Virus record (IMG/VR): IMGVR_UViG_3300005613_000001
Span: 310,001-374,000 of that record
Strand: one strand, 5' to 3'
DNA length: 64,000 nucleotides
Shown: one piece after another, positions 1 to 12,080 of the stretch
Layout of the letters: each line of letters begins with the position of its first letter
Numbering within the stretch: position 1 is the stretch's first letter
Program-made: the position numbers and the translations under genes
Notes under the pieces: model-generated
What the model saw: only the letters and a program-made list of their open reading frames with translations
The model's database searches: none
What the model was told of the DNA's origin: nothing

Positions 1-524
1 GCATCAAAATCTAATATTATTCTTTGACACTTCTCCGCCTCAGCTTTGGAAGTGTACTTGTTGAATGTGTCCCAACAATTTAAAAACCAACCGAGGGGCT
101 TCTTGTTGTATTGTATTTTCCCCTGTATTTTTTTACCCTCTGCTGTAGTTTGTTCCCAAGCACGCCAACTACCAAAATTTGTGTATAAAGCTTTGTGGCT
201 TCCATCCCCATTAAAAGATGTTTGGAAAAAACGCTGAATGGAAGTATCTATATTTTCACCATAAGCTCCGCAGATTCGCCACCCCTCATAAATATTACCC
301 ACCGTAGGTTGATACACATTGCTTTTTATTGACCGCATTTCATCTTTAGCAAACGCTACGAATAGGGTTTGGTTTCTAAAATAAAATAATGTTATAGGGA
401 ATTCAACATAATGTACCTTAAGGTCATACCCGTTATAGACTACGCGCCTTTGAGGTTCATATTCCCTAAGAACATCTTTTCTATTTGTTACACCCCTAGT
501 CGTCGCTAGAACCCGATATGCCAT
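1..524 (-). CDS. Prokaryotic E2 family D-like (PRTRC protein B-like) protein, partial; runs off the left edge
   Basis: Hand-translated, not in ORF track. ATG at 524 after an AGG-rich SD, open to base 1. Motifs EFPITLF, GNIYEGWRIC, FFQTSF are shared with ORFs at 15608 and 35863. Confidence 0.55.
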   Translation of the reverse strand, partial: MAYRVLATTRGVTNRKDVLREYEPQRRVVYNGYDLKVHYVEFPITLFYFRNQTLFVAFAKDEMRSIKSNVYQPTVGNIYEGWRICGAYGENIDTSIQRFFQTSFNGDGSHKALYTNFGSWRAWEQTTAEGKKIQGKIQYNKKPLGWFLNCWDTFNKYTSKAEAEKCQRIILDFD

Positions 525-975
525 CCTGATTTCCTTTTTCAACAACGGCTGCCGTTATTAATAGGTGTTGGCAAAAGTCGCGGCCAAATACCTCAGCGAT
601 TAAATTCCATTCACGCTCGTCATTCTGAGCATGTTCCTCAGGAGTAAGCTCAACAATAGGCCCGAATGCCTTTTCCAAAAACCGTTTTCGTTCTGCAATT
701 TCTTCTTTTGTTGGAAGTGGCTCGTTGGGGCACTCTTGGTTGCGGTATTCTTCATGAATCTTAGGATTGATCTTTTCCGCCATCCTGCCGGGCAATTCAC
801 GAAGATCATAGTTGAAACCGCAAGTGCAAGGTGCGTAACCATACACTTCAACAGCCCGAAAGACCGCGCAGGGAGCAAAGTGGTTAAGAACCCCCTCACG
901 CCGGGCTATTACAGGTCTGAAATACCTGTCTTTAAGAAGTTGGAGATGTTTTATTGTACGCTCTTTTTCGTCCAT
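496..975 (-). CDS. Hypothetical protein
   Basis: ORF track; start moved to the ATG with a GGAG SD 7 nt upstream. Confidence 0.7.
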   Translation of the reverse strand: MDEKERTIKHLQLLKDRYFRPVIARREGVLNHFAPCAVFRAVEVYGYAPCTCGFNYDLRELPGRMAEKINPKIHEEYRNQECPNEPLPTKEEIAERKRFLEKAFGPIVELTPEEHAQNDEREWNLIAEVFGRDFCQHLLITAAVVEKGNQDGISGSSDD

Positions 976-995
976 TGATAGCTCCAATAAAACAA

Positions 996-1027
996 GCCCT
1001 TATCTACATTCTACCATAGATAAGGGC
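996..1027 (-). terminator. Probable intrinsic terminator ending the tRNA-array transcript
   Basis: 11-bp perfect stem GCCCTTATCTA/TAGATAAGGGC followed by TTGTTTTATT on the minus strand, just downstream of the last tRNA. The loop contains TGGTAGAAT, an extended -10-like element. Confidence 0.6.
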
Positions 1028-1036
1028 AAAGGAAAG

Positions 1037-1119
1037 TGGCCTTGGCGGGATTCGAACCCGCACGGGGATACCCCCACATGGTCCTGAACCATGCGCGTCT
1101 GCCATTTCGCCACAAGGCC
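1037..1119 (-). tRNA. trnL: tRNA-Leu(CAG), long variable arm, no encoded CCA
   Basis: Acceptor GGCCTTG/CAAGGCC, anticodon arm CATGG-TTCAGGA-CCATG, T loop TTCGAAT. Confidence 0.95.
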
Positions 1120-1154
1120 ATTATTAATACTATATAACGAACAACGGAGGCTAC

Positions 1155-1946
1155 ATGTTAAAAGTTAATTGTAATTATGGAAATCATCACGTAAGAGTAA
1201 AGCACAGAAAGTTCATTTCTGTAGCTATTACTAGCCGTTGCAATCTAAAGTGCGCTAGCTGCTCTCAGTTGTGTGGAGTAAGACGAAAACGTTGGGATAT
1301 TTCATTAGATCAGTTAAAAATCAATTTGGATGTAATTAAAAATACTCGCAAGAAATCAAACCGGCTAGTGATAATTTACGGGGGAGAGCCAACATTACAC
1401 CGCCAGTGGGAAGAAGTTTTACAGATACTTAGAACGTACAAAACCCTCCGATTCACTGTTTGCACCAACGGCAGAGTTCGAGTTACTCCTGAAAAAGATC
1501 CTCAAATAAAATATAGAGTTAATACCCTTAAGCAAAAAAACAAAGGAGCAAACATTATGACTTGGCATGCTCCAAAAGACTTATACCCTCGTAGAAGGTC
1601 ACAATCCTTTTGGAAAGCAGCCCAGCGTAGATGTTATTTATGGAAACGTTGTGGTGTTTGTATTTATGATGATCGCGCCTACATATGTACCGTTGCTGCT
1701 GCTATGGATTTTGCGTTGGGAAAGCCTTATGGTTGGAAAGTGAATGGTGAAAACACATTTCACAAAACAGATGAACAAATTAATCAACAAGGAAATATTT
1801 TCTGCCAAAGATGTCAGTGGTGTTTGTGTCAAAAACATCAAAGGGGCCAACATCCCACAATAATATCAAAAACTAATTTTGACATTATGAAAGCTTTGAA
1901 TTTGAAGTGTAAAAAAATAAAACGAGGGATCGTTGCGGTAAAGTGA
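1155..1946 (+). CDS. Radical SAM protein with Cys-rich C-terminus
   Basis: CNLKCASC (CxxxCxxC), GGEP motif, TNG motif. Confidence 0.85.
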   Translation: MLKVNCNYGNHHVRVKHRKFISVAITSRCNLKCASCSQLCGVRRKRWDISLDQLKINLDVIKNTRKKSNRLVIIYGGEPTLHRQWEEVLQILRTYKTLRFTVCTNGRVRVTPEKDPQIKYRVNTLKQKNKGANIMTWHAPKDLYPRRRSQSFWKAAQRRCYLWKRCGVCIYDDRAYICTVAAAMDFALGKPYGWKVNGENTFHKTDEQINQQGNIFCQRCQWCLCQKHQRGQHPTIISKTNFDIMKALNLKCKKIKRGIVAVK

Positions 1947-2186
1947 TTACCAATCTTTATAATCAGTTAAATCTAATTCCTCTTTAGTGATATTATTTAC
2001 AACTTTGATAACCATGCCAAGTCCTGTAGGTGTAAACATATAGGTGAATCCGCCTCCTATTGCTCCATAATTAGGGCCACCCACTCTAGCTACATCGGTT
2101 CCCTCTTGTTGTTTAGCCACCTTGGCGTTCTGTTCCTGTTTCCAAGTATCAATTTGTGCTTGTTGATTTTTAGATATTATAAACAT
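1947..2186 (-). CDS. Conserved phage hypothetical protein (GAIGG..TY.FTPTGLG type)
   Basis: ORF with AGGAG SD; motif typical of phage small proteins. Confidence 0.7.
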   Translation of the reverse strand: MFIISKNQQAQIDTWKQEQNAKVAKQQEGTDVARVGGPNYGAIGGGFTYMFTPTGLGMVIKVVNNITKEELDLTDYKDW

Positions 2187-2199
2187 TTATTTCTCCTAG

Positions 2200-2283
2200 T
2201 GCCGAAGAGAGGACTCGAACCTCCACGCCCCGAAGGACATGAGTTCCTAAAACTCAGGCGTCTACCAATTCCGCCACTTCGGC
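2200..2283 (-). tRNA. trnL: tRNA-Leu(TAG), long variable arm
   Basis: GCCGAAG/CTTCGGC acceptor; TGAGT-TTTAGGA-ACTCA anticodon arm. Confidence 0.95.
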
Positions 2284-2799
2284 TTGTTTTTTCCGTCGTT
2301 CTCTTTGTTGCTTTGCAATCGTAGTTATCTCTGCCCAACCTTTTGATCCACACCACCCATCTGTTTGACTATGGCAATTGGGACAATTAAATTCTAAGTT
2401 TTCTTTTCTGTCATCAAGCCAATCTTTATTTTTGTGATCCACTTGGAGCATAATTGGTTTTCCATTCCATTCTCCCTCTAACCCACAAGTGCATTTGTAT
2501 TCTCTTCCTGATTCAATTAATGCTCTTCTTAATCGAAAAGAGTGTTGCCTTTTGCCGTGTGTCCTTTTAATCAATATTTCTTGCCATGTTTTCTTTTTTG
2601 GACCACCCCTATGATTTTTACCACAATTGGCCGCCCGCCCTAGAAAATGTGATGTATCTAAACCAAATTCTTTTATTTTACGTGAAATATGTGTGTGTGA
2701 CCCGCCTGCCTCTTTTAAACCCAACTTTCTTAGCACTTGAGCTATAGAAATAGATTCTTCAACTAATGGTTTTAGTAATGCTTTTGTGTATTTGCTCAT
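2254..2799 (-). CDS. HNH homing endonuclease; last 10 codons overlap tRNA-Leu(TAG)
   Basis: CTCG...LQVDHKN...ENLEFNCPNCHSQT HNH/zinc motifs. Confidence 0.85.
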   Translation of the reverse strand: MSKYTKALLKPLVEESISIAQVLRKLGLKEAGGSHTHISRKIKEFGLDTSHFLGRAANCGKNHRGGPKKKTWQEILIKRTHGKRQHSFRLRRALIESGREYKCTCGLEGEWNGKPIMLQVDHKNKDWLDDRKENLEFNCPNCHSQTDGWCGSKGWAEITTIAKQQRERRKKQAEVAELVDA

Positions 2800-2843
2800 A
2801 CATTAATATAGTATGAGTCTTCCATTTTTTTTGTGTTTTCCAA

Positions 2844-3362
2844 TCATTTTTCGGCATATTGTTTCCACTTTTCATCTAGCCACTTATAAAGGGCTTTGTT
2901 TTCTACTGATTGAGCATGACCTATTATCTTCTCACCAGTATCTACATAACGGTGACCTTTTTCTGGCCCTGTTTCTATTGGTCGCTTGCTTTCTTCACCA
3001 ATCGCCCCATCTTTATCGTCCCACCCCTGCGACTCCGTACAAGGCTCACCTGTGTCCTTGTAATGCCAATCATTAAAATACTCTACTGGTCGTCCAGTTT
3101 CAGTACAAATCGGAGGGTATAAAGACTCTTCTAAAGGAATACCTTCAGGCACAGGTTCTAATTCTTCTAACGCATGCACAGTCCCAAAAGGAGGCCCTGT
3201 ATCCCAGTGATACTCCGTAAATAAGTAATAATTACCAAACTTCTCCCTAATCCCTATAAACCCACTAACTGCCTCCCTGAATACCCCTAAAGATAAATTC
3301 CTAGAGGATATCCGGTAAAGCATTCCATTCTTGCATTCGTCAAGAGGAATCATACTAGCCAC
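2844..3362 (-). CDS. Hypothetical protein
   Basis: 172 aa ORF in operon order. Confidence 0.7.
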   Translation of the reverse strand: MASMIPLDECKNGMLYRISSRNLSLGVFREAVSGFIGIREKFGNYYLFTEYHWDTGPPFGTVHALEELEPVPEGIPLEESLYPPICTETGRPVEYFNDWHYKDTGEPCTESQGWDDKDGAIGEESKRPIETGPEKGHRYVDTGEKIIGHAQSVENKALYKWLDEKWKQYAEK

Positions 3363-3811
3363 CGTCTAATTTGATTTTCCAACTCATCTAAACTTGATAC
3401 TATTTCAATTTCGGGGCGGACCAATTCAACTTGAACTTCCAAATCAAATCTGCGTTCGTAATCAGGATGTACGCCCACAAACAGGTTGTATTTCTTATCC
3501 AACACCTTGCCCAACTCAAACAAAGTGATTGGCTGGATAGTTTCAGGAGTAAACCAAAAACTTACCGCCTCGGTATTACCCAACCAAAAGTGTTCCCATT
3601 TAATTTGTCTTTTTGCCTCGGGGCCTTCTTTTCCGAATTCTTCCCTTCGCCTCGGATTCACCACAAATAGGTCGGTATCCTCAAATCTTTTAGCGAAATC
3701 AAATTGCCAAGGCTCACACCCGGAGATACCACCAGCGAGGAAGATGCTTTGTACGTCAACGAATTCAGCCACATCACAGTTATTCGGGGCTTCCAGGTAT
3801 CTCATCTTCAT
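3350..3811 (-). CDS. Nucleoside 2-deoxyribosyltransferase-like protein
   Basis: IFLAGG..WQ, NPRR, QIKWE, PITLFELG motifs. Confidence 0.8.
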   Translation of the reverse strand: MKMRYLEAPNNCDVAEFVDVQSIFLAGGISGCEPWQFDFAKRFEDTDLFVVNPRRREEFGKEGPEAKRQIKWEHFWLGNTEAVSFWFTPETIQPITLFELGKVLDKKYNLFVGVHPDYERRFDLEVQVELVRPEIEIVSSLDELENQIRRWLV

Positions 3812-3968
3812 CCTCCTTGTCGCATTTATTACAAATTACAGAGCCATGTTCAGGCACAAACCACACACCACATTCTTTACATTTGGTAGTATCGTTTATT
3901 TCACACACCATTTGCATTAATATTTGTTGCTTCATAATACAAGAGGCGTAAGGTGTCCCCGCTACCAA
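3780..3968 (-). CDS. Small Cys-rich hypothetical protein
   Basis: CKEC...CNKC; fills the gap in the operon. Confidence 0.45.
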   Translation of the reverse strand: MVAGTPYASCIMKQQILMQMVCEINDTTKCKECGVWFVPEHGSVICNKCDKEDEDEIPGSPE

Positions 3969-4012
3969 GACCTTGCGGGAAGGTTGTATTTGCCAGGCCG
4001 GTTACCTCCACC

Positions 4013-4459
4013 TTACCACCATTTCCTTCCATTGGGCCTATTTAATGTTAAATGGAAAGCAACAGCCTTATCATCAAAGCCTGTGGTTTCCGAAATATAA
4101 GTCATTACCGCCTCTTTATCTTCAGGAGTACGAGCAGCACTTAAGAGGCGTTCAATATGGTCTTCAACTTCTGGTTTTAATTCTAATTGCTCAAAAGTTT
4201 CACAATAACAATATTTACAACCTACGGGCTCCATGTCTTCATAGGAATCAAAATGCCTGTGATAATGATGGCCGCATTTGCAAATCCTGTAGTTGCCAAA
4301 CTCAGGGTCATATAGTGGGGGTAGTTCGTCTCCTACACAAAGTTCCAATTCATTTCTTACCACTCTGACAACATAACCGTTATCAAGATGAAGTAGAGTT
4401 TGCCATTTCATGGCCTCTACTTTTACTATCGTTCTTCCTGCTAATTCATTTATATCCAA
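4013..4459 (-). CDS. Hypothetical protein with possible Zn-binding motif
   Basis: CKCGH..H.H...CKYC. Confidence 0.65.
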   Translation of the reverse strand: MDINELAGRTIVKVEAMKWQTLLHLDNGYVVRVVRNELELCVGDELPPLYDPEFGNYRICKCGHHYHRHFDSYEDMEPVGCKYCYCETFEQLELKPEVEDHIERLLSAARTPEDKEAVMTYISETTGFDDKAVAFHLTLNRPNGRKWW

Positions 4460-4460
4460 T

Positions 4461-4781
4461 TTATCTTCCTGTCAATGCTCTTTCATAAAGATTCTTCACA
4501 GCTTCTTTGCAAGGTTGGGTGTATTGAATGCCCGGTTCCGTTAATGAAGGCATAAGAAAAACCATACCTTCATGAAGTTGATCTTTTGGTATTCCCATTA
4601 CGACACTGAAATTATTTAAATCAACCATTTGTTCTTCTTCATCCCCCCACCACTCTAACTGATCTTCCGCATGCGACTCAGGATGATCGGGGCATAGTTC
4701 CGTAGATTTTGCCATTAACACCCTTACAGTGTCGTCGTAATCAGGAGCCCTAAAAATTTCATCAATACATAAACGAAGCAT
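4461..4781 (-). CDS. Hypothetical protein
   Basis: ORF with GGAG SD. Confidence 0.65.
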   Translation of the reverse strand: MLRLCIDEIFRAPDYDDTVRVLMAKSTELCPDHPESHAEDQLEWWGDEEEQMVDLNNFSVVMGIPKDQLHEGMVFLMPSLTEPGIQYTQPCKEAVKNLYERALTGR

Positions 4782-4822
4782 GATAAACTCCCTTTTCTAA
4801 TATAGGAACGAAATCACATAAG

Positions 4823-4907
4823 TAGCCGAGGCGGGATTCGAACCCGCACGCCCTTAACGGGCACGGGATTTTAAGTCCCGAGCGTCTGCCAATTCCGCCA
4901 CTCGGCC
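4823..4907 (-). tRNA. trnL: tRNA-Leu(TAA), long variable arm
   Basis: CGGGA-CTTAAAA-TCCCG anticodon arm; canonical D and T arms. Confidence 0.95.
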
Positions 4908-5174
4908 CTCTCCACTTTTACCCGATCTAAGAAACATAAAGGTTCCAAAAAGTATTCCAAAAGTACCCAATACTACGGCCACTAGACCCGGTGTTAAAAT
5001 ACTGAAATCTTTGTTAGCACTTCCAATTCCTGCATACCAAGCGCCAAATATCGCTGCACTATGCCCAACCACAAGAGAGAGCGAACCCAACGCAGCACGG
5101 GGAGCTTTGACCCCCATTTTGGTCATTAGTTTAATCATTAATTTACATCCGTTGGTACATTTCGTTGTTCCCAA
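4854..5174 (-). CDS. Small two-TM membrane protein; 3' end reads into tRNA-Leu(TAA)
   Basis: Two hydrophobic stretches; C-terminal RVAELADARDLK is tRNA-derived. Confidence 0.55.
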   Translation of the reverse strand: MGTTKCTNGCKLMIKLMTKMGVKAPRAALGSLSLVVGHSAAIFGAWYAGIGSANKDFSILTPGLVAVVLGTFGILFGTFMFLRSGKSGEGRVAELADARDLKSRAR

Positions 5175-5536
5175 TGGTTCTCTAATGCTCCCTCAATGAA
5201 AACCAACCAAAGCTCTCGGTCAGAATCCCAAGTTACAAATGATTTAAACATTACAGGACCATTGGGATTGGGGCGGATATCGACCTGCCTCATTACCCCA
5301 GCATCACCACCGAATTCAATTTTTAACGAGGCGGCTACCTCTTCGTTTCCATCAATATCTTCTACTATCCCCTCAACCATCCTCGCCACTCTCTCTTTTG
5401 TATCCTCCCGTCCTACACACTGGACAGCAGCACGCATCATGGGAGAGAACGAACAAACATAGGGAATATGAAAGCCGTCAGATGTAAGATAGTCGGAAAC
5501 GAATGCATAGTTTTTCATTTTTTCTTCCTGTGACAA
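5138..5536 (-). CDS. Hypothetical protein
   Basis: 132 aa ORF in operon order. Confidence 0.65.
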   Translation of the reverse strand: MSQEEKMKNYAFVSDYLTSDGFHIPYVCSFSPMMRAAVQCVGREDTKERVARMVEGIVEDIDGNEEVAASLKIEFGGDAGVMRQVDIRPNPNGPVMFKSFVTWDSDRELWLVFIEGALENHWEQRNVPTDVN

Positions 5537-5691
5537 TCACAGCGACATGGTGTTTTGTTGCCCGCCTTCTTAGAACACTCTTTTGGAGTTAATCCAGGGG
5601 CGGCACAACAACATACCGTTTGCTTTACCTCACCATCTACAATCCGCTTAACTTCCGTCCAATACTCACCAGATTTGCGGAAAGTAGTCAT
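5515..5691 (-). CDS. Small Cys-rich hypothetical protein
   Basis: Start reset to the ATG 2 nt after the tRNA discriminator base. Confidence 0.5.
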   Translation of the reverse strand: MTTFRKSGEYWTEVKRIVDGEVKQTVCCCAAPGLTPKECSKKAGNKTPCRCDCHRKKK

Positions 5692-5693
5692 AG

Positions 5694-5776
5694 TACCGAA
5701 GGTGGGATTTGAACCCACACGCCCTTACGGACAATAGATTTTGAATCTATCGCGTCTGCCATTCCGCCACTTCGGC
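5694..5776 (-). tRNA. trnL: tRNA-Leu(CAA), long variable arm
   Basis: ATAGA-TTCAAAA-TCTAT anticodon arm. Confidence 0.95.
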
Positions 5777-6036
5777 TAATTATTAAGATGCAAATGTTCT
5801 TTGCGGTAACGATCCTGCAATTCTTGCCCGCCTCCTAATTTCTCAATGTCCGACAGACCAGTTTTTTCACCTAATGCTTGAATACAAATTGGGCAACATG
5901 GAGTATTTTCCTCAGGATCGCGGTTATCAATAATCAACAGACCACAAAATGTCAAAGAGGCATCGGCATCGCCCATGTGAACAAAACCGTTAATTTGTGT
6001 TACATCAAATGAGTCTATTTTTTCACTTTGGCTCAT
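5776..6036 (-). CDS. Hypothetical protein
   Basis: Start reset to MSQSE; stop TAG shares its G with tRNA base 1. Confidence 0.6.
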   Translation of the reverse strand: MSQSEKIDSFDVTQINGFVHMGDADASLTFCGLLIIDNRDPEENTPCCPICIQALGEKTGLSDIEKLGGGQELQDRYRKEHLHLNN

Positions 6037-6439
6037 TGCTTGTCCCTGGCGCGTTACGACTGATAGGTGTTTGAGCATTTGCCTCCGCAGACTCAGCAAA
6101 TTCTGCTAGGTCTTTAAACACTTTATTTGCTTCTGTAGACAAATTACTTGCCATTCCTATTACTCTTTCCACCGAATCACGCATTTTCTCTAATTTTACT
6201 TCCGGTGTAAGTTTTTCAAGCCACTCTAAGACGGAAGTATTATTATCCCATTTATTAGGAAGATCACCAATTAGATCAACGCCTCTATAATTTATTTTGA
6301 ATTTACCGCACTGACAGCGGTAGTAATGATAACTCGGCCATCTATTACAAACTCCCCCACGATCTAGGATATCGGTCTTTTTTAGCCCGCTTTTTCCACC
6401 TAAACATTCCCATTTATGTTTGTGTCCTAAACCAAACAT
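6023..6439 (-). CDS. Hypothetical protein
   Basis: 138 aa ORF in operon order. Confidence 0.65.
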   Translation of the reverse strand: MFGLGHKHKWECLGGKSGLKKTDILDRGGVCNRWPSYHYYRCQCGKFKINYRGVDLIGDLPNKWDNNTSVLEWLEKLTPEVKLEKMRDSVERVIGMASNLSTEANKVFKDLAEFAESAEANAQTPISRNAPGTSNEPK

Positions 6440-6449
6440 TTAATCTTCC

Positions 6450-6899
6450 TTAATCTGGGGTTACTTGTTCGCCGGAAATCTCTTCAATTAGAGATTCGTA
6501 ATGCATAACGAGGCTTATCCAGGGATCAATTTGCTCTAATAGTTCATCTCTGTTTAGCTTTTGTAGATTGCTTGACAACATCCAATACTCAGGTTTTGTG
6601 AGTGGTCTTTCTCTAGCCTTTTTTAGAATTTCTACCTCGGCACGGACTTCTTTCAATCGACTTGATAAAGCATGTTCAAGCAAAAAGCAATCATCAATAC
6701 CAAACACTAACGTTTTATATCTTGTTTGCTGGTCTTCCCACCATCGTTCGAATTGTTCATCTGACTTGAAATTACATACCTCCACCCGATCAAACATCTC
6801 AGTATTGGGAGGCATTTCACCCGCAAAGTCTTCCTCGGCTTTTTCGCCATCTTTCCAGAGGACGGGGATGTTCTTCCAATATGCTACTGTGCGTATCAT
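6450..6899 (-). CDS. Hypothetical protein
   Basis: 149 aa ORF with ATGA overlap to the upstream gene. Confidence 0.7.
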   Translation of the reverse strand: MIRTVAYWKNIPVLWKDGEKAEEDFAGEMPPNTEMFDRVEVCNFKSDEQFERWWEDQQTRYKTLVFGIDDCFLLEHALSSRLKEVRAEVEILKKARERPLTKPEYWMLSSNLQKLNRDELLEQIDPWISLVMHYESLIEEISGEQVTPD

Positions 6900-7357
6900 T
6901 TGTCTCCCTTTAATTTTCTACCATGCTTTGCAAGAGTCTCTCTCAATTCAATTAATGTTGAATTGCCAAAATTGGGACAATTTACAAAATCGTCTGCGGT
7001 AAAAGAACACAACTCATTAAAACAAAAATTCTTTCTATCGGCTTGCCCATATTTTCCATACATAAGACGAATAAAAGCCTTTTTGGCTCGCAATGGCATT
7101 TGGGAATAAAATAATTTAAACTCATCTGTTGGAAGACAATCATCAACTCTCACTTCAACAGTGGCTTTCATCGCCTTTTTTACCGTCGCTTCTAATGCTT
7201 CAAATTGTTGCACCCAATCTTCATGTGGATTTTTACAGGTTTCACTTGCTATATGACAAAGCTTATAGACAAAACTCTGCCAGTCTGTTGGGGGTTCTAA
7301 GTCTAGAAGTGTGAAACCCTCTAAAGTTTTACATACTCTTTCAGAAAGATCAGACAT
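6896..7357 (-). CDS. Protein with C-terminal RNA polymerase alpha-CTD-like domain
   Basis: MPLRAKKAF...ELCSFTADDFVNCPNFGNSTLIELRETLAKHG resembles the alpha-CTD L..RA...dL....dLl...NFG..sl.Ei...L pattern; SD AAGGAG. Confidence 0.65.
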   Translation of the reverse strand: MSDLSERVCKTLEGFTLLDLEPPTDWQSFVYKLCHIASETCKNPHEDWVQQFEALEATVKKAMKATVEVRVDDCLPTDEFKLFYSQMPLRAKKAFIRLMYGKYGQADRKNFCFNELCSFTADDFVNCPNFGNSTLIELRETLAKHGRKLKGDK

Positions 7358-7375
7358 TTTAAACTCCTTTAAAAG

Positions 7376-7459
7376 TGCCGAAGGTGGGACTTGAACCCAC
7401 ACGGGATTTCTCCCACATGGCCCTCAACCATGCGCGTCTGCCAATTCCGCCACTTCGGC
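7376..7459 (-). tRNA. trnL: tRNA-Leu(GAG), long variable arm
   Basis: CATGG-TTGAGGG-CCATG anticodon arm. Confidence 0.95.
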
Positions 7460-7680
7460 TATTTTCTATTTTCTTCCCTACGTTGCCTGAAACTTTTACC
7501 ATCTGGATTGCGAGGGGCATCCAAATCTTTTTGATCTTCTTCTAAACACCATTTAACAAATTTACAAATTATGTCCAACTCTTCTTTTGATGCATCTACA
7601 TGATCAAATCGCCAATGGTCTAATCTTATAGCCAAGTTCTCTGAACATTCTTCAATTAAATCAGCGGGCTCTATTTTCAT
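7459..7680 (-). CDS. Hypothetical protein
   Basis: ORF; stop abuts the tRNA 5' end. Confidence 0.6.
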   Translation of the reverse strand: MKIEPADLIEECSENLAIRLDHWRFDHVDASKEELDIICKFVKWCLEEDQKDLDAPRNPDGKSFRQRREENRK

Positions 7681-7931
7681 TCCTGCCTTTCATCTATTGT
7701 TTTAAACTCTTCATGACAAGCAAAACATCTAACTATGTGGGGAATTTGAACCATTTCAAATTGATCCCAACCTTCTGGTAGCTCTTCCCATTCTTCTAGT
7801 CCATGAAAATCACGATATGCTTCCTCCCGCCCCTCTTTTGTAAATTCTGCCTTTTGAGGAAGGGCATAATTAGCGGCATCGCAATGTGGGCAATACCAAT
7901 GATAGGCGGTTTGTAATTCAACTACTTTCAT
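7677..7931 (-). CDS. Zinc-ribbon hypothetical protein
   Basis: CPHC ... CFAC. Confidence 0.65.
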   Translation of the reverse strand: MKVVELQTAYHWYCPHCDAANYALPQKAEFTKEGREEAYRDFHGLEEWEELPEGWDQFEMVQIPHIVRCFACHEEFKTIDERQE

Positions 7932-8119
7932 GTTTTTTTACAGGGACAACTTGAACAGCCATCATCTAATGATCTTTCCCAACAGGTAATACTATCACCA
8001 CAGGTATTGCGATTTCCGCCTCCTATTGTAAATGTGACTATCCTAGATTTGGGTTCTTCTGGAAGTTTTGGTACAAAAACTCCTGCAATACAAGTAGCCA
8101 AAAAACTACGTCTTTTCAT
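7928..8119 (-). CDS. Small protein with twin-arginine-like N-terminus
   Basis: MKRRSFLATCIAGVFVP; Cys-rich C-terminus. Confidence 0.5.
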   Translation of the reverse strand: MKRRSFLATCIAGVFVPKLPEEPKSRIVTFTIGGGNRNTCGDSITCWERSLDDGCSSCPCKKT

Positions 8120-8283
8120 GATTCGTACCCGTTGTATCTCCCATAGCCCGGTTGGCATTCTGGGTTTCTTTTTGCTCTACGACGCTCAATTCTTCTTTTG
8201 CTAACTTTCAGGTGACGATGATACTTCCCGTGGCAGTAACCATCGGCTTGTTCTACGCTAGCTACTTTTCTGTCTTTAGCCAT
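8116..8283 (-). CDS. Small basic hypothetical protein
   Basis: GGAG SD and an upstream TGTGG-TATACT promoter. Confidence 0.55.
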   Translation of the reverse strand: MAKDRKVASVEQADGYCHGKYHRHLKVSKRRIERRRAKRNPECQPGYGRYNGYES

Positions 8284-8315
8284 TGATAGTCTCCCATTTA
8301 CAGTATACCACACAT

Positions 8316-8618
8316 TCAGCTAATGGAAACCAAATCAAATCCGTAAAAGCCATCCACTTGCTCTTTATTGCCGGTATCGTCTTCTATCTCGGCATGTTTG
8401 TATTGAGCCTTCAAACAAGCCGCCTCTGCCCTTTCTCGGGTTTTAAATAGAAAAACGGACTGACAACATCCACAGATTGCTTGGCAAGTTACCTTAGTCC
8501 AGCCTTTATATTCATTTTTATATTTATCCTCCACTTTATCTAATGTACGTTTAGATTTAGGAGGCGTGGGCTTTTTACGCTCAAATTTCTTCTGTTTTCT
8601 CTTTTTCATTTTTCTCAA
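8316..8618 (-). CDS. Hypothetical basic protein
   Basis: ORF in operon order. Confidence 0.5.
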   Translation of the reverse strand: MRKMKKRKQKKFERKKPTPPKSKRTLDKVEDKYKNEYKGWTKVTCQAICGCCQSVFLFKTRERAEAACLKAQYKHAEIEDDTGNKEQVDGFYGFDLVSIS

Positions 8619-8793
8619 AATGCCATTTATTTAATTGTTGTCGCAATTCCTCTAACTCTTCTTCTCTGAATGTCATATTACGGAATTCAGTCTTCACCTG
8701 ATATCCAGCACCACCCGCAGGGTAGCAAATTTCTCTTTTGCACTTTACTAGACACCAACCATCTTCATTGGTAATGATATGGATTTTTCTCAT
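8581..8793 (-). CDS. Hypothetical protein
   Basis: ORF in operon order. Confidence 0.5.
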   Translation of the reverse strand: MRKIHIITNEDGWCLVKCKREICYPAGGAGYQVKTEFRNMTFREEELEELRQQLNKWHFEKNEKEKTEEI

Positions 8794-8965
8794 ATCGCTT
8801 CACCATTTCAATTATAATATTGCCTTTTTCATCGGTGTTTTCACATTCTGGACAAAGTTCAAGACCAGTCCCGCCGATTACGCTTTCTAAATATGCGGTT
8901 CTAGAAAACGCCTTCTTACATTCTGGACATTCCGTAGTGACTTCTACTTTTGTTCCCCAAGTCAT
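8765..8965 (-). CDS. Zinc-ribbon hypothetical protein
   Basis: CPEC ... CPEC. Confidence 0.55.
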   Translation of the reverse strand: MTWGTKVEVTTECPECKKAFSRTAYLESVIGGTGLELCPECENTDEKGNIIIEMVKRYEKNPYHYQ

Positions 8966-9125
8966 AATTTTCTTTTTTTTGATGAATCTCTACTTTCTCA
9001 ACTCTAAATTTCTTTCTATAGCTTTTTCAAGACTAGTTGCCTTAATGGCCCCATAAAACTGTTCTAATTTTGGGGCGAAACAAAAGTAGGTCTTTTCCAT
9101 CGAAATCTCCTTTTGTTTTATTTAG

Positions 9126-9204
9126 TGGCACAAGAGGGATTCGAACCCTCATCCACATGTTTTTGAAACATGTCGCTCTGCCAGGGTGATTGGCGTATTG
9201 TGCC
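9126..9204 (-). tRNA. trnL: Atypical tRNA with CAA (Leu) anticodon, short variable loop and enlarged D loop
   Basis: GGCACAA/TTGTGCC-A acceptor; CATGT-TTCAAAA-ACATG; 5-nt variable loop TGGAT; GAGGG-TTCGAAT-CCCTC. Confidence 0.85.
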
Positions 9205-9208
9205 TCAG

Positions 9209-9285
9209 TGGCTCAGGTGGGATTCGAACCCACATCCACATAATTTTAAGTTATGTCGCTCTGCCGTTAGTTGGCGTACTGAGCC
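9209..9285 (-). tRNA. trnL: Atypical tRNA with TAA (Leu) anticodon and short variable loop
   Basis: GGCTCAG/CTGAGCC-A; CATAA-CTTAAAA-TTATG; variable loop TGGAT. Confidence 0.85.
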
Positions 9286-9289
9286 TTCA

Positions 9290-9496
9290 TCATCCAAATG
9301 CCTTTCTAGCATCTGTTTCGTTATTGAACAAACGACAACCCCAATAGGTTAAACTGTTTTCGTCAAACGATGAGTTGTTAGCTAATGCTATTTTACATGC
9401 TTCGTTAAAAGTGTCTGCTTCTTGAATGGCATACAAGAAAGCCGTACCACTCTGTCCCGTCGCCCTAAACCCTTCTACCCAAATTTCAAATTTCAT
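9290..9496 (-). CDS. Hypothetical protein
   Basis: ATG with GAGG SD. Confidence 0.65.
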   Translation of the reverse strand: MKFEIWVEGFRATGQSGTAFLYAIQEADTFNEACKIALANNSSFDENSLTYWGCRLFNNETDARKAFG

Positions 9497-9515
9497 TTTA
9501 ACCTCTTTTTTCAAG

Positions 9516-9594
9516 TAGCACGGGAGGGATTCGAACCCTCATCCACTAGTTTCTAAAACTAGTCGCTCTGCCAGGGTGATTGGCGTACCGTGCC
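9516..9594 (-). tRNA. trnL: Atypical tRNA with TAG (Leu) anticodon and short variable loop
   Basis: GGCACGG/CCGTGCT-A; CTAGT-TTTAGAA-ACTAG; D and T arms identical to the 9126 gene. Confidence 0.85.
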
Positions 9595-9598
9595 ATAT

Positions 9599-9796
9599 TT
9601 ACAAGTTGTCACTCAATGATTTTAAATCTTTTATAATTTGCTTATCAATAGGCTCTAAAAGTTTTGAACTAATATCCGCATGCTTAGCACATGATGCACA
9701 CAAATGCCGAAGACCATTCAAATACTGCCGCGTTGTTACCGCATCTTCATCGCAGGTCGCCCTTGGATTGCTACTATGCCAATGTTCGCATTTCAT
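9599..9796 (-). CDS. Small Cys/His hypothetical protein
   Basis: CEHWH...C...CASC. Confidence 0.5.
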   Translation of the reverse strand: MKCEHWHSSNPRATCDEDAVTTRQYLNGLRHLCASCAKHADISSKLLEPIDKQIIKDLKSLSDNL

Positions 9797-9814
9797 GATA
9801 AAATTAAGTTAATT

Positions 9815-10200
9815 GTGCGTGGTCCACACCCCTTTCAGGGTTCTGTTACTGCTTCGGGTAGTCAGTGGTTTATTTCTGACCTTGAAGCAACCTATCTTGT
9901 GTGGTAGGTCTGCGGGTATCAGTCATTTTTGTTCAACTTGTAAGAGTTACTTACAAGTTGGATTTGTTAGACATTCCCGCCCCCGCTTTATTACGTATGC
10001 GGTTGCCACCGTCCAATAGTTCTCCATCTATCGGACCCTTTCGCTGGTTAAGGCGATACCGACACAATCAACTTTGTTTGCAGCTTAGGATCAATACATG
10101 CACCCTGACCTTACGCCCGCAAGCGGCCAATTAATTTGACTTACCAGGCAGCACCTTGTTAGTTCCCCTAAGCCCCATCAAGGCTATTCGGTTGCAAACA
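9815..10200 (-). ncRNA. Putative large structured ncRNA (unclassified) within the tRNA array
   Basis: No credible ORF. Helices TGTTTGCA/TGCAAACA, GCTTAGG/CCTAAGC, an 11-bp CAACTTGTAAG hairpin, a CUUG tetraloop and a GAAA tetraloop. Confidence 0.55.
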
Positions 10201-10202
10201 AG

Positions 10203-10287
10203 CGGAAGGTGGGGGATTCGAACCCAACCAACCCATTTTCAGGGCGACCGGCTTCCAACCGGCTTCCTAACCATTCGGTTACCTTCC
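10203..10287 (-). tRNA. trnS: tRNA-Ser(GGA); T stem has two mismatches (possibly degenerate)
   Basis: GGAAGGT/ACCTTCC-G; loop TTGGAAG; long variable arm; T stem TTGGG/CCCCC. Confidence 0.75.
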
Positions 10288-10298
10288 AAATTATAAAG

Positions 10299-10386
10299 CG
10301 GAAGGAGCCGGAGTCGAACCGGCACGGGTCGTTAACCCCTAACAGTTTTCAAAACTGCGGCCACCACCACATTGGCTTGCCCTTCC
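10299..10386 (-). tRNA. trnS: tRNA-Ser(TGA)
   Basis: GCAGT-TTTGAAA-ACTGT; long variable arm; G73. Confidence 0.92.
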
Positions 10387-10393
10387 TAAAAAG

Positions 10394-10482
10394 CGGAAGC
10401 GACTGGAATCGAACCAGCACCGGGTTTGAAACCGGAATTGATTAGCAATCAACCGCAACGAGCCAATATTTGCCTCGCTTCC
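10394..10482 (-). tRNA. trnS: tRNA-Ser(GCT)
   Basis: GTTGA-TTGCTAA-TCAAT; long variable arm; G73. Confidence 0.92.
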
Positions 10483-10487
10483 GTAAG

Positions 10488-10569
10488 TGCGCCAGAGAGG
10501 AATCGAACCTCTACAGCCGAAGGCGTGTGATTTACAGTCACAGGGGCTCACCACCTGCCCAACTGACGC
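10488..10569 (-). tRNA. trnY: tRNA-Tyr(GTA)
   Basis: TGTGA-CTGTAAA-TCACA. Confidence 0.93.
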
Positions 10570-10584
10570 ATTTTTAACTCCTAG

Positions 10585-10670
10585 TGGGCCGGGAGGGATT
10601 CGAACCCCCATCGTTTACCCTGTGGGACGTGATTTACAGTCACGTAGCTTCACCATTTGCATACCGACCC
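10585..10670 (-). tRNA. trnY: tRNA-Tyr(GTA), second divergent copy
   Basis: CGTGA-CTGTAAA-TCACG. Confidence 0.93.
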
Positions 10671-10674
10671 TAAG

Positions 10675-10760
10675 CGGAAGCGGTGGGACTCGAACCCACA
10701 ACGGGCTTTCGCCGCGCACTTGTTTTCGAGACAAGCTCCTCATCCAGCCGGATCGCTTCC
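10675..10760 (-). tRNA. trnS: tRNA-Ser(CGA)
   Basis: CTTGT-CTCGAAA-ACAAG; long variable arm. Confidence 0.93.
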
Positions 10761-10778
10761 GTAGGCTTTACCAAATTG

Positions 10779-11015
10779 TCAAAGATCTCTCTGCCGCCTC
10801 TTTGAGACAGCCTTTTCTCTCAAGTACAATTCCAATTCTTTCGCATCTTCTGGGGTCATTGAAGCAATCTTATCTCCAAGAGCCCTAATCCAATCATCGG
10901 GATTTGTTGTGCCCACTTTCGGTGGTTTCCGAGGCGGCACCAAATCCGGGTTTGTTTTCAATTCTTCTGAAAACTCTTCCAAACCTTCAATGATTTTCTC
11001 TGCTATAGTTTTCAT
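10779..11015 (-). CDS. Hypothetical protein
   Basis: ATG 2 nt after the tRNA-Phe discriminator base. Confidence 0.6.
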   Translation of the reverse strand: MKTIAEKIIEGLEEFSEELKTNPDLVPPRKPPKVGTTNPDDWIRALGDKIASMTPEDAKELELYLREKAVSKRRQRDL

Positions 11016-11017
11016 AG

Positions 11018-11090
11018 TGGTACGGGCCGGATTCGAACCGGCGTCTCCTGGGCTTCAACCAAGCGCTATTCCAAACTCAGCTACCGCACC
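11018..11090 (-). tRNA. trnF: tRNA-Phe(GAA) with G37/C38
   Basis: CTTGG-TTGAAGC-CCAGG; GGTGCGG/CCGTACC-A. Confidence 0.88.
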
Positions 11091-11096
11091 TTTTAG

Positions 11097-11170
11097 TGCT
11101 ACGGACTGGATTTGAACCAGTGACACCCAGATTTTCAGTCTAGTGCTCTACCGGGCTGAGCTACCGCAGC
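11097..11170 (-). tRNA. trnF: tRNA-Phe(GAA)
   Basis: CTAGA-CTGAAAA-TCTGG. Confidence 0.95.
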
Positions 11171-11180
11171 ATTTTAAGTT

Positions 11181-11330
11181 TTACATCATATATCCTGAAC
11201 CATCTCTACCGCCATCTGTACGACAAGGAAGATCTTCTTGACTTCCTTTTGGTGGTTCTGGTCGTTCTCCCATGTTCTCGGGTGGATTTTGACCACCTTT
11301 ACAAATTTCTGGTTCTGTTATGTGCTTCAT
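11181..11330 (-). CDS. 49-aa hypothetical protein, first gene after the attenuator
   Basis: Hand-translated MKHITEPEICKGGQNPP...GYMM; GGAG SD. Confidence 0.5.
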   Translation of the reverse strand: MKHITEPEICKGGQNPPENMGERPEPPKGSQEDLPCRTDGGRDGSGYMM

Positions 11331-11345
11331 TTATGTTACTCCAAT

Positions 11346-11386
11346 AAAAAAAGCCTTTTTCCGGCGTTGCGCCGGAAAAAGGCTTT
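11346..11386 (-). terminator. Intrinsic terminator (attenuator 3:4 hairpin)
   Basis: 17-bp stem AAAGCCTTTTTCCGGCG/CGCCGGAAAAAGGCTTT with a 3-nt loop, ending in a run of 7 T. Confidence 0.9.
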
Positions 11387-11406
11387 ATCGTTGAATCCTC
11401 TTAGCC

Positions 11407-11481
11407 TTAGGCGCACCGCCACCGATCACTGAGATACAGTGATAAAAACAAAAAACTAAGGCTTGAGGAGAAGATACCCAT
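11407..11481 (-). CDS. Putative attenuator leader peptide MGIFSSSLSFLFLSLYLSDRWRCA
   Basis: AAGGAAG SD 8 nt upstream; codons 4-18 are all Phe/Ser/Leu/Tyr; overlaps hairpin segments 1 and 2. Confidence 0.8.
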   Translation of the reverse strand: MGIFSSSLSFLFLSLYLSDRWRCA

Positions 11482-11541
11482 TTTAAACACTTCCTTTTCG
11501 TGATTTCAACCCACGCCATAAAGGCGATTGTTGTGTAATCT

Positions 11542-11570
11542 ATTATAGTCCACTCAGGACAAATTTTCAA
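11542..11570 (-). promoter_or_regulatory. sigma70-type promoter of the tRNA operon
   Basis: TTGAAA-N17-TATAAT. Confidence 0.85.
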
Positions 11571-11670
11571 GAGTTTTTTTCCAAGAGTTAGCGAGTGGGT
11601 GGTGGTGGCTGCTAGGATGGTAAGCATCTTCGAGCGTCCTGACCCACCCGCCGACTCTATGACGCATTTT

Positions 11671-12015: not shown

Positions 12016-12021
12016 ATTCCC

Positions 12022-12049
12022 ATGATACCACACGAAATTACGATGTAAA
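12022..12049 (-). promoter_or_regulatory. Extended -10 promoter
   Basis: TTTACA-N16-TATCAT with TGTGG immediately upstream of the -10. Confidence 0.65.
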
Positions 12050-12080
12050 GCTACTCTCTTAGAGAAAATAGGAGAAATCT

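Follow-up and report, generated by a model that had tools for sequence, protein, structure and literature searches.

Which pressure gathers tRNA genes for only four amino acids, Phe, Ser, Tyr and Leu, into one sorted array within a phage genome, and is the array regulated as a unit? The window analysed here is a stretch of 64,000 nucleotides, positions 310,001 to 374,000 of the IMG/VR phage record IMGVR_UViG_3300005613_000001. The record is 527,112 bp long and has 65 tRNA genes, all on one strand, which cover all 20 amino acids. An earlier note, made from the sequence alone, had described the array between 996 and 11170 as restricted to these four amino acids and sorted by amino acid, and had taken it for a regulated module that backs up one structural or modification class of host tRNAs. 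The array described there is real, and its gene order is confirmed exactly. The proposed function is only partly supported: the evidence for regulation is stronger than could be seen in the note, while the grouping follows amino acid rather than tRNA structure.

The sorted tRNA array

ARAGORN finds 11 tRNA genes in the array and Infernal with Rfam models adds five, giving 16 genes on the minus strand (Table 1). Their anticodons cover all six Leu and all six Ser codons. None of the genes encodes CCA, and each ends in N73-C74 followed by T. The sorting is not due to chance: of the 65 tRNA genes in the genome, the 17 for Phe, Ser, Tyr and Leu are all located here, and no other type is. The seventeenth gene is a second Ser-GGA at genome positions 309025-309109, on the same strand, 0.9 kb beyond the left edge of the window and 1.9 kb downstream of the hairpin at 996-1027. 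This hairpin, which in the note appeared to close the unit, therefore does not close the set. The long-arm Leu genes are furthermore 0.8-2.5 kb apart, separated by small ORFs, an HNH endonuclease gene and one plus-strand radical-SAM gene. A single transcript of 10.5 kb is doubtful in view of this opposite-strand gene and of internal promoter-like sites.

The reading that the array backs up one structural class of tRNAs is only partly right. The phage encodes a complete tRNA set, so that every class is backed up. Three class-I-shaped Leu tRNAs are part of this array, while long-variable-arm tRNAs with Asn, Lys, Cys, Glu and Ile anticodons lie in the other arrays. The membership of Phe is likewise lineage-specific, because in the distant relative LR756511.1 the syntenic array holds only Ser, Leu and Tyr, and Phe lies in the main tRNA cluster.

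Table 1. Features of the array and its upstream region, in order of transcription on the minus strand (positions within the window; folding energies are predicted).
Position	Strand	Feature	Observations
11542-11570	-	Sigma-70-like promoter, TTGAAA-17-TATAAT	11 of 12 consensus matches, best in 1-12500; predicted start near 11535; only a weaker promoter-like site (11509-11480) lies between it and the first tRNA
11407-11481	-	Leader mini-ORF, 24 codons plus TAA stop	Preceded by AAGGAAG ribosome-binding site; 15 of 23 residues after Met are F/S/L/Y; codons used TTC, TTT, TCC, TCA, AGC, AGT, CTT, CTC, TTG, TTA, CTG, TAT
11428-11472	-	Uninterrupted run of 15 F/S/L/Y codons	Leader codons 4-18
11455-11468	-	Region 1	Inside leader codons 5-9; 1:2 duplex -19.6 kcal/mol, in the minimum-free-energy fold
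11398-11413	-	Region 2	Contains the leader stop codon (11409-11407); can pair with region 1 or, as antiterminator, with the terminator 5' arm
11343-11386	-	Intrinsic terminator	Perfect 17-bp stem, 3-nt loop, T tract; -27.6 kcal/mol; runs straight into a GGAG ribosome-binding site for the next ORF
11181-11330	-	49-codon ORF between terminator and first tRNA	Called gene in the identical ENA contig; no Pfam match
11096-11170	-	tRNA-Phe (GAA)	68 bits
11017-11090	-	tRNA-Phe (GAA)	63 bits
10779-11015	-	78-codon ORF between Phe and Ser-CGA	
10676-10760	-	tRNA-Ser (CGA), long variable arm	35 bits
10584-10670	-	tRNA-Tyr (GTA), copy 1	
10487-10569	-	tRNA-Tyr (GTA), copy 2	Ortholog of Tyr copy 2 in LR756511.1 (77% identity)
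10393-10482	-	tRNA-Ser (GCT)	
10298-10386	-	tRNA-Ser (TGA)	
10204-10287	-	tRNA-Ser (GGA)	Weakest call, 23 bits; ARAGORN only at a relaxed threshold; may be a degenerate copy
9797-10203	-	407-nt ORF-poor stretch that folds significantly	z = -3.57, 0 of 100 shuffles fold as well; no Rfam match at E <= 10; no paralog or homolog in the sequences compared
9516-9594	-	Type I (short-arm) tRNA-Leu (TAG)	52-54 bits for the three type I genes, 5-nt variable loop
9209-9285	-	Type I tRNA-Leu (TAA)	As above
9126-9204	-	Type I tRNA-Leu (CAA)	As above
7375-7459	-	tRNA-Leu (GAG), long arm	
5693-5776	-	tRNA-Leu (CAA), long arm	
4822-4907	-	tRNA-Leu (TAA), long arm	
2254-2799	-	HNH homing-endonuclease gene	phrog_10822, E = 1e-52; 3' end overlaps tRNA-Leu (TAG)
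2199-2283	-	tRNA-Leu (TAG), long arm	
1155-1946	+	Radical-SAM gene inside the array	PF04055, E = 1e-8
1036-1119	-	tRNA-Leu (CAG), long arm	
996-1027	-	Terminator-like hairpin	Found by the terminator scan; 13-bp stem, T-rich tail, -17.9 kcal/mol; tail and ribosome-binding-site motif match those of the leader terminators; same-strand ORFs follow

The predicted leader and its counterparts

Just upstream of the array, outside the interval considered in the note, lie a sigma-70-like promoter, a ribosome-binding site, a mini-ORF and a terminator. The codons of the mini-ORF call on 9 of the 11 anticodons of the array, and only 12 of 6,836 small ORFs in the genome reach its fraction of F/S/L/Y residues. 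Its run of 15 such codons is the longest in all six frames of the genome (the next longest are 13 and 12), and lies on the right strand 258 nt upstream of the only Phe/Ser/Tyr/Leu array. Folding with a ribosome mask reproduces the logic of classical attenuators, with alternative 1:2, 2:3 and 3:4 pairings. With the ribosome A site at codons 3-11, 10 nt of the terminator 5' arm pair with 11413-11403 (2:3 duplex, -13.5 kcal/mol), whereas the arm is free when the ribosome is at the stop codon. The tail motif of the terminator, TTTTATTGGAG, recurs behind the leader of operon B (see below) and at the hairpin at 996-1027.

The note had suggested examining whether other amino acids sit in separate arrays with leaders of their own, and this is the case for two other tRNA operons of the genome. 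In operon A (leader at genome 137926-137840), 22 of 27 leader residues are A, R, V, I or Q, and the codons include two ATA, matching the rare Ile-TAT tRNA downstream. The leader is followed by a terminator and then by tRNAs for Arg (three), Val (four), Gln, Ile and Ala (two), and among 6,836 small ORFs only this leader itself reaches that fraction. In operon B (leader at genome 167203-167072), 35 of 41 residues fall into the 13-amino-acid set of the downstream tRNAs. All 13 are present, F and Y are absent, and this combination is unique among the 6,836 small ORFs. Cross-matching of leaders against tRNA sets is clearly diagonal.

The same design precedes the syntenic Ser/Leu/Tyr array of LR756511.1, which shares proteins at about 40-55% identity with our phage and has SbcCD next to the array, as in our phage. 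Here, a TTGACA-16-TAAAGT promoter is followed by a 27-codon leader rich in Ser, Leu and Tyr, which uses all six Ser codons, and by a terminator of -24 kcal/mol located 38 nt before the array. This leader ranks 1 of 1,936 small ORFs, and the switch model behaves in the same way. Phe covaries with the content of the operons: the leader of our array has three Phe and that of operon B none, while in LR756511.1 a candidate leader of the main cluster, where the Phe tRNAs are located, has two Phe and no Leu. By contrast, SbcC-bearing fragments of other relatives show no tRNAs nearby. The design also precedes at least five tRNA groups in two unrelated phage contigs, here called L128 and L163. L128 has three tandem units whose leaders are rich in L/S/C/W, S/Y/M and K/Q, followed by Trp-Leu-Cys-Ser, Tyr-Met-Ser and Gln-Lys-Arg tRNAs, respectively. 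L163 has two such units, the best with p = 1.8e-8 in a screen of 78 tests.

Proposed leader-peptide attenuation and alternative readings

We interpret the array as one of at least three tRNA operons of this phage, and propose, with fair but not full confidence, that transcription into it is gated by a ribosome-mediated (leader-peptide) attenuator. In this view, polymerase starts at the promoter and a ribosome translates the leader, which calls on nearly every tRNA the array encodes. If the charged tRNAs are plentiful, the ribosome would run to the stop codon and cover region 2, so that the terminator forms and transcription stops. If any of them is scarce, the ribosome would stall over region 1, region 2 would pair with the 5' arm of the terminator, and polymerase would read through into the tRNA genes. 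The tRNAs would be cut out of the transcript and completed with CCA, for which the phage encodes a nucleotidyltransferase-family gene. The result would be negative feedback on the supply of exactly these tRNAs. What the analysis demonstrates are the genes and their sorting, the leader ORF and its composition, the terminator, the alternative pairings in a folding model, the two matched leaders at the other operons, and the recurrence of the design in one relative and two unrelated contigs; that transcription starts and terminates as predicted, that the leader is translated, that termination responds to stalling, and how far the read-through transcript extends, are inferred from sequence alone, and a search for RNA runs found none that holds this sequence. 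We also have to consider that at equilibrium the terminator always forms in the model, so that the switch depends on kinetics, as in known attenuators, that a clear antiterminator is obtained only for stalls at codons 3-11 and not at 12-18, and that the model is weak for operon B. Phe, Ser, Leu and Tyr codons are the T-rich codons and a U-rich leader inflates this class, although the genome-wide empirical ranks control for that. Because of internal promoter-like sites at 10317-10290 and 9648-9619 and the plus-strand gene, the attenuator may control only the proximal part of the array.

Alternatively, the array may be an ordinary, constitutively expressed tRNA cluster that tops up codons poorly served by the host, with the mini-ORF and hairpin as an incidental U-rich leader and operon boundary. 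The phage uses TTA (30%), TTG (24%) and CTA (11%) for Leu, which correspond to the three anticodons with an extra type I copy, and huge phages carry up to 67 tRNAs (PMC7162821). We nevertheless consider this unlikely, as it explains neither three leaders in one genome that each match their own downstream tRNA set, nor the same design in LR756511.1, L128 and L163, including a K/Q-rich leader before Gln-Lys-Arg tRNAs, nor the genome-wide maximum of the codon run. The sorting could also merely reflect history, as arrays grow by tandem duplication and anticodon change, so that isoacceptors and the mutually convertible class II families become neighbours without functional reason. The three type I Leu genes are 77-86% identical to each other, all Ser genes share the acceptor stem GGAAG, Leu-GAG and Leu-CAG share an anticodon stem, and partial sorting (four Val, three Arg, three Lys) is likewise seen in the other arrays. 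History explains adjacency, but not a leader whose codons track the operon content, nor why this tracking is kept when the content differs between phages, as for Phe. Both Tyr paralogs predate the split from LR756511.1, so the layout has been maintained for a long time, and we regard history alone as possible but doubtful.

A sharpened form of the note's reading, compatible with the attenuator as its sensor, is that the array replaces class II (long-arm) host tRNAs destroyed by a host defence nuclease, with the type I Leu tRNAs as nuclease-resistant substitutes. Ser, Leu and Tyr are exactly the bacterial class II families and are kept together in a distant relative, tRNA-cleaving defences and phage tRNAs that evade them are documented (PMC10264068, PMC11555353, PMC13056530), human Schlafens cut type II tRNAs, and the short-arm Leu copies lack the arm such an enzyme would read. 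However, the one bacterial Schlafen characterised cleaves Lys, Met, Ala, Val, Phe and Ile tRNAs rather than class II ones, and the grouping here follows amino acid, not shape. In L128 and L163, Leu and Ser are grouped with Trp and Cys, and Tyr with Met, and type I tRNA-Leu is also a normal chromosomal gene in many Actinomycetota (PMC6614811). With host and defences unidentified, this reading appears unlikely. It is least likely that the mini-ORFs encode small functional peptides such as membrane peptides or type I toxins. The leader of our array and the L/S-rich leaders of L128 and L163 are indeed hydrophobic and resemble signal peptides, but the A/R/V-rich, the polar 13-amino-acid, the S/Y/M-rich and the K/Q-rich leaders are not membrane-like, yet each matches its tRNA set. 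Moreover, the composition, but not the peptide sequence, is conserved between our phage and LR756511.1.

Comparison with known systems

We found no published description of tRNA operons under feedback control by leader-peptide attenuation. The closest parallel is the ribosome-mediated attenuation of amino-acid operons and of pheST (trpL, hisL, leuL, thrL, ilvL, pheL and the pheST leader), which shares the promoter-proximal mini-ORF with a ribosome-binding site, the run of regulatory codons, the intrinsic terminator, the mutually exclusive 1:2, 2:3 and 3:4 pairings, and a stop codon placed so that a terminating ribosome blocks region 2. In the phage, however, the genes controlled would be tRNA genes instead of enzymes or synthetases, so that the output is the very molecule being sensed. 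The leaders sample 4 to 13 amino acids and many synonymous codons rather than repeating one, and several units occur per genome, each matched to its own tRNA subset. The tRNA clusters of T4, T5 and huge phages (Al-Shayeb et al. 2020, PMC7162821) likewise have many tRNA genes on one strand, interspersed with small ORFs and homing endonucleases, no encoded CCA and a phage nucleotidyltransferase-family gene, but in the papers we could search they are described without leader-peptide control or strict partition by amino acid.

The inducible tRNA L-array (trn operon) of Anabaena PCC 7120 (PMC8421152) is also a supernumerary tRNA operon, off by default and switched on when translation is impaired, and is associated with an HNH gene. 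Its induction is attributed to promoter direct repeats and a putative labile repressor, and the paper does not mention a leader, attenuator or terminator. In T-box riboswitches, read-through is likewise decided by tRNA status, but a T-box binds uncharged tRNA directly and involves no translation, and neither a T-box nor any other Rfam cis-regulatory element was found in 1-13000 of the window.

The three short-arm Leu genes belong to a widespread type I tRNA-Leu family. They share with the type I tRNA-Leu of Streptomyces coelicolor (PMC6614811) a short variable loop, A73, U8-A14 and G18G19. E. coli LeuRS does not charge the Streptomyces type I tRNA, so charging of the phage copies depends on the unknown host. 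The same D-arm motif occurs in more than 120 bacterial genomes and more than 118 viral contigs, always with Leu anticodons. The three copies of our phage differ in having 5-7 nt between A15 and G18, against 2-4 nt in all 241 other matches.

Composition of the tRNA set and the short-arm tRNA-Leu genes

The record is a single IMG/VR virus record of 527,112 bp, rated 100% complete by CheckV and with a GC content of 40.8%. Tail sheath, ribonucleotide reductase, SbcCD, glycosyltransferase and LAGLIDADG genes in the window show it to be a huge tailed phage. ARAGORN and Infernal together recover 16 tRNA genes in the array, in exactly the order listed by the earlier note, so that the observation itself holds. 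The weakest of these calls is a Ser-GGA gene (23 bits). The genome has 65 tRNA genes, all on the minus strand, at 55 kb, 109-138 kb, 156-168 kb and 309-321 kb, which together cover all 20 amino acids with near-complete isoacceptor sets. Phe, Ser, Tyr and Leu occur only in the 309-321 kb block. This block has a 17th member, a second Ser-GGA 0.9 kb left of the window and 1.9 kb downstream of Leu-CAG, past the terminator-like hairpin that the note took to close the unit.

The compact half of the array has spacers of 4-14 nt within groups, while the long-arm Leu genes are 0.8-2.5 kb apart and are separated by small hypothetical ORFs, an HNH endonuclease gene, a nucleoside-deoxyribosyltransferase-like gene and a plus-strand radical-SAM gene. 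None of the tRNA genes encodes CCA; 63 of the 65 read N73-C74 and then T, and the same 3' context is seen in the phage LR756511.1. A PF01743 nucleotidyltransferase-family ORF is present in the genome, but no PF00133 (Leu/Ile/Val/Met-type) synthetase was found.

The three short-arm Leu genes are 77-79 nt long, each with a 5-nt variable loop, a 3-bp D stem, A14, A15, G18G19, U48 and A73. Similar genes of 74-77 nt, annotated as tRNA-Leu, were found by BLAST in cultured Vibrio, Gordonia, Rhodococcus and Enterococcus phages. In an alignment of nine sequences the D-arm block CCAA...GGCAGAG is invariant, as are columns T8, A14, A15, T54 (position U48) and A79 (position 73), in agreement with the Leu identity set A73, U8-A14, A15-U48 and G18G19 (PMC2377443, PMC6614811). 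The cloverleaf is likewise supported by covariation, with 99.4% of cells paired, compensatory changes in 17 of 20 pairs, and 0 of 500 shuffles reaching that. A pattern fixing this D arm, a 5-nt variable loop and only A35 in the anticodon matched more than 118 IMG/VR contigs and more than 120 bacterial genomes (Actinomycetota, which account for most of the bacterial hits, Planctomycetota, Acidobacteriota and others), both counts being lower bounds. Every one of the 241 matches has a Leu anticodon, mostly TAA and CAA. We conclude that these genes are members of the type I tRNA-Leu family, which is far more common than the literature suggests. This family has been characterised in Streptomyces coelicolor, where it is charged by the host LeuRS but not by E. 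coli LeuRS (PMC6614811); leucine charging of the phage copies is inferred by analogy. The copies are unusual only in having 5-7 nt between A15 and G18, against 2-4 nt in the other matches. Their anticodons (TAA, CAA and TAG) read TTA, TTG and CTA, which make up 65% of the Leu codons in this phage. An origin by deletion of the arm from the long-arm copies was rejected, as identity to these is only about 60-66% and the genome contains no close parent.

An earlier D-arm pattern scan of viral contigs had returned 28 loci, all of them false positives inside a methyltransferase-like coding sequence, and a stricter tRNA pattern returned nothing. Relatives sought through the ORFs of the array were either distant phages without the array or identical copies of this phage, and the tail sheath gave only one 87%-identical fragment of 15.7 kb that does not reach the array. 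A Tyr-based pattern found one unrelated small phage, a terminator-motif pattern found nothing, and five relatives found through SbcC (G004-G008) are fragments without nearby tRNAs. In searches of sequencing reads, only one sediment DNA run contained parts of the stretch and no RNA run did. Contigs from this sediment metagenome show a relative with indels between tRNA genes, in which intervening stretches are replaced or missing; one joint would remove the type I Leu-CAA gene. The intergenic ORFs therefore turn over faster than the tRNAs.

Coordinates of the features of the tRNA arrays and their surroundings (w, window; g, genome record; L-numbers are our locus designations)
Feature	Coordinates	Strand	Remarks
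tRNA array, 16 genes	w 1036-11170	-	compact half 9126-11170
tRNA-Ser (GGA), weakest call	w 10204-10287	-	23 bits
tRNA-Ser (GGA), 17th member	g 309025-309109	-	outside the window
Sigma-70-like promoter	w 11570-11542	-	best of the scan
Leader C ORF	w 11481-11407	-	ATG at 11481; 24 codons; AAGGAAG ribosome-binding site
Terminator of leader C	w 11386-11343	-	perfect 17-bp stem, T tract; -27.6 kcal/mol
Terminator-like hairpin	w 1027-996		
Leader A ORF	g 137926-137840		28 codons
Leader B ORF	g 167203-167072		43 codons
ORF-poor structured stretch	w 9797-10203	-	407 nt
Overlap of HNH ORF and tRNA-Leu (TAG)	w 2254-2283		30 nt
LAGLIDADG endonuclease gene	w 59037-60446		
Stretches replaced or missing in the sediment relative	w 5691-6450, 6893-7374, 8960-9207		
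Suppressor-type tRNAs, CTA and TTA	g 167265-167425		L048 11266-11426; 86 nt (long arm) and 74 nt
Long-arm tRNA, Asn-GTT	g 159182-159270	-	89 nt
Long-arm tRNA, Lys-CTT	g 161818-161900	-	83 nt
Long-arm tRNA, Lys-TTT	g 163106-163187	-	82 nt
Long-arm tRNA, Cys-GCA	g 163459-163544	-	86 nt
Long-arm tRNA, Glu-TTC	g 166213-166302	-	90 nt
Long-arm tRNA, Ile-TAT	g 134633-134730	-	98 nt
tRNA-like genes with enlarged anticodon loops	g 118940-119023 and 158908-158994		L045, L046
PTH2-type peptidyl-tRNA hydrolase gene	g 166309-166725	-	L048 10310-10726; PF01981, E = 4.5e-33
PF01743 nucleotidyltransferase-family ORF	g 512064-512567		541 codons

Leader ORFs and terminators upstream of tRNA operons

Upstream of the first Phe gene of the array (operon C), a promoter, a ribosome-binding site, a short ORF and an intrinsic terminator follow each other on the same strand. 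Codons 4-18 of the ORF are all Phe, Ser, Leu or Tyr codons, and this run of 15 is the longest in all six frames of the genome. The ORF uses both Phe codons, four Ser codons, five Leu codons and one Tyr codon, which together call on 9 of the 11 anticodons of the array. Region 1 (leader codons 5-9) pairs with region 2, which contains the stop codon, at -19.6 kcal/mol, while region 2 can instead pair with the 5' arm of the terminator at -13.5 kcal/mol. In a folding model of the transcript at the moment when the 3' arm has not yet been made, a ribosome with its A site at codons 3-11 gives the 2:3 antiterminator, whereas a ribosome at the stop codon leaves the arm free to form the terminator. The model is crude, using a fixed 30-nt ribosome mask and minimum-free-energy folds only, and comparative support for the pairings rests on two sequences. 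At equilibrium the terminator always forms, as expected for a kinetic switch, so that switching can only be argued kinetically. By sequence and in the folding model, the region thus has the components of a leader-peptide attenuator. A T-box riboswitch is not supported, as no match to the T-box model was found at E <= 1 in positions 1-13000.

Whether other tRNA groups of the genome have leaders of their own had been proposed as a check beforehand, and they do. The Arg-Arg-Arg-Val-Gln-Val-Val-Val-Ile-Ala-Ala block (operon A) is preceded by a leader in which 22 of the 27 residues after Met are A, R, V, I or Q, and two of whose codons are ATA, matching the rare Ile-TAT tRNA; a terminator follows. 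The leader before the Glu...Pro block (operon B) contains all 13 amino acids of that block, with 35 of 41 residues in the set, and has no Phe or Tyr. Among 6,836 small ORFs of the genome, the fraction of leader A is reached only by itself, the combination in leader B (all 13 amino acids present and a fraction of at least 0.85) is unique, and the fraction of leader C is reached by 12. The leader-by-set matrix is diagonal. The terminators of A and B were missed by our hairpin searches, and these two leaders were found by eye from the scans. The terminators of A and B share an antiterminator and terminator design, and all three terminators end in the same T tract, run into a GGAG ribosome-binding site and are followed by an ORF.

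The same arrangement is found in a distant relative, LR756511.1, a 595-kb uncultured phage whose proteins are about 40-55% identical to those of the present phage, and in which SbcCD likewise lies beside the array. It keeps a separate array of Ser x4, Leu x6 and Tyr x2 about 140 kb from its class I tRNA region, which contains its Phe genes. A -24 kcal/mol terminator lies 38 nt upstream of this array, preceded by a 27-codon leader rich in Ser, Leu and Tyr that uses all six Ser codons, and before that by a TTGACA-16-TAAAGT promoter. The leader ranks 1 of 1,936 small ORFs for Ser/Leu/Tyr content, and the folding model gives the same switch. The peptide sequence is not conserved between the two phages, but the composition is, and the Phe content of the leaders tracks the location of the Phe tRNAs.

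Matches in unrelated phages came from a screen of 78 terminator-adjacent small ORFs upstream of tRNAs, in IMG/VR loci that had been retrieved for another reason, and reach p = 1.8e-8. Contig L128, which also carries an almost complete type I Leu isoacceptor set, has three tandem units, whose leaders are rich in L/S/C/W, S/Y/M and K/Q and are followed respectively by Trp-Leu x6-Cys-Ser, Tyr-Tyr-Met-Met-Ser-Ser and Gln-Lys-Arg-Arg tRNAs. Contig L163 has two such units. Each of the tandem leader units in these contigs starts with the same promoter-like block, TTTACA..., then TTTACTATAT..., then TATATATAATATAAAGG, which suggests a duplicated regulatory cassette.

Proposed attenuation of phage tRNA operons

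The best-supported reading is that the array is a tRNA operon under leader-peptide attenuation, which would give feedback control by the supply of its own products. The genes, the leaders and their composition, the terminators and their recurrence in other operons and phages are observed in the sequences and the alternative pairings in a folding model, whereas translation of the leader, a rise in read-through when the cognate charged tRNAs are limiting, and its dependence on leader translation are inferred in the absence of any expression evidence. The interpretation offered in the earlier note, a regulated module backing up one structural or modification class of host tRNAs, is therefore partly supported. 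Its regulated module finds support, but the structural class is the weaker part, since the grouping follows amino acid: type I Leu genes are inside this array, while long-arm tRNAs with Asn, Lys, Cys, Glu and Ile anticodons are outside it. In addition, Phe membership varies between relatives, and other phages group Leu and Ser with Trp and Cys. The hairpin downstream of Leu-CAG is a plausible terminator of the same design as the leader terminators, but does not bound the tRNA set. A role in evading host defences is compatible with the attenuator and remains a possibility only, while a history of tandem duplication explains the adjacency of the genes but not the matching leaders.

Attenuation itself is textbook knowledge and tRNA arrays of huge phages are known (PMC7162821), as is an inducible bacterial tRNA array for which a different control has been proposed (PMC8421152). 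Full-text searches for leader-peptide or attenuator control of tRNA operons or phage tRNA genes found nothing in a literature collection that omits most subscription journals, so that novelty is probable but not proven. We consider it somewhat more likely than not that leader-peptide attenuation of tRNA operons is a general, so far undescribed regulatory principle of tRNA-rich phages, in which each operon carries a "codon sampler" leader measuring the supply of precisely the tRNAs encoded behind it. In this view the phage would make tRNAs on demand, for example when host tRNAs are depleted by defence nucleases or outrun by phage codon usage, and the sorting of phage tRNA genes into amino-acid-specific blocks would be explained. 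Why phages carry tRNAs, and how they use them, has been argued for fifty years between codon compensation and evasion of tRNA-targeting defences, while the regulation of these genes has hardly been addressed. A sensor that reads tRNA supply through a matched leader peptide and feeds back on tRNA transcription would give a direct, testable mechanism and would extend classical attenuation to RNA gene products. It would also provide a simple sequence signature (promoter, matched mini-ORF, terminator, tRNAs) for mining other genomes, and the leaders could serve as compact natural reporters of the supply of specific tRNA sets.

Unusual tRNAs and other features of the arrays

Two adjacent suppressor-type tRNAs lie between a perfect sigma-70 promoter with tRNA-Met and the operon B leader. 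An alternative genetic code was considered because of these tRNAs, but was rejected, as all three stop codons end long ORFs (TAA 259, TGA 144, TAG 89) and code 11 gives dense ORFs. Six tRNAs combine long extra arms with class I anticodons, and normal-length copies of several of these sit beside them. Two further tRNA-like genes have anticodon loops of 17-19 nt where the model expects 6-7; the first has G3:U70, which is the Ala identity pair. For positions 15999-16073 on the minus strand of locus L055 of LR756511.1, we note that SerRS normally needs the long arm.

The peptidyl-tRNA hydrolase gene is located inside operon B, between its leader terminator and the first tRNA. The HNH endonuclease ORF runs into the 5' part of tRNA-Leu (TAG). 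The ORF-poor stretch between Ser-GGA and type I Leu-TAG folds with z = -3.6 and contains a perfect 11-bp hairpin; it has no Rfam match, and no paralog or homolog among the sequences examined, and may be a stable non-tRNA RNA processed from the array.
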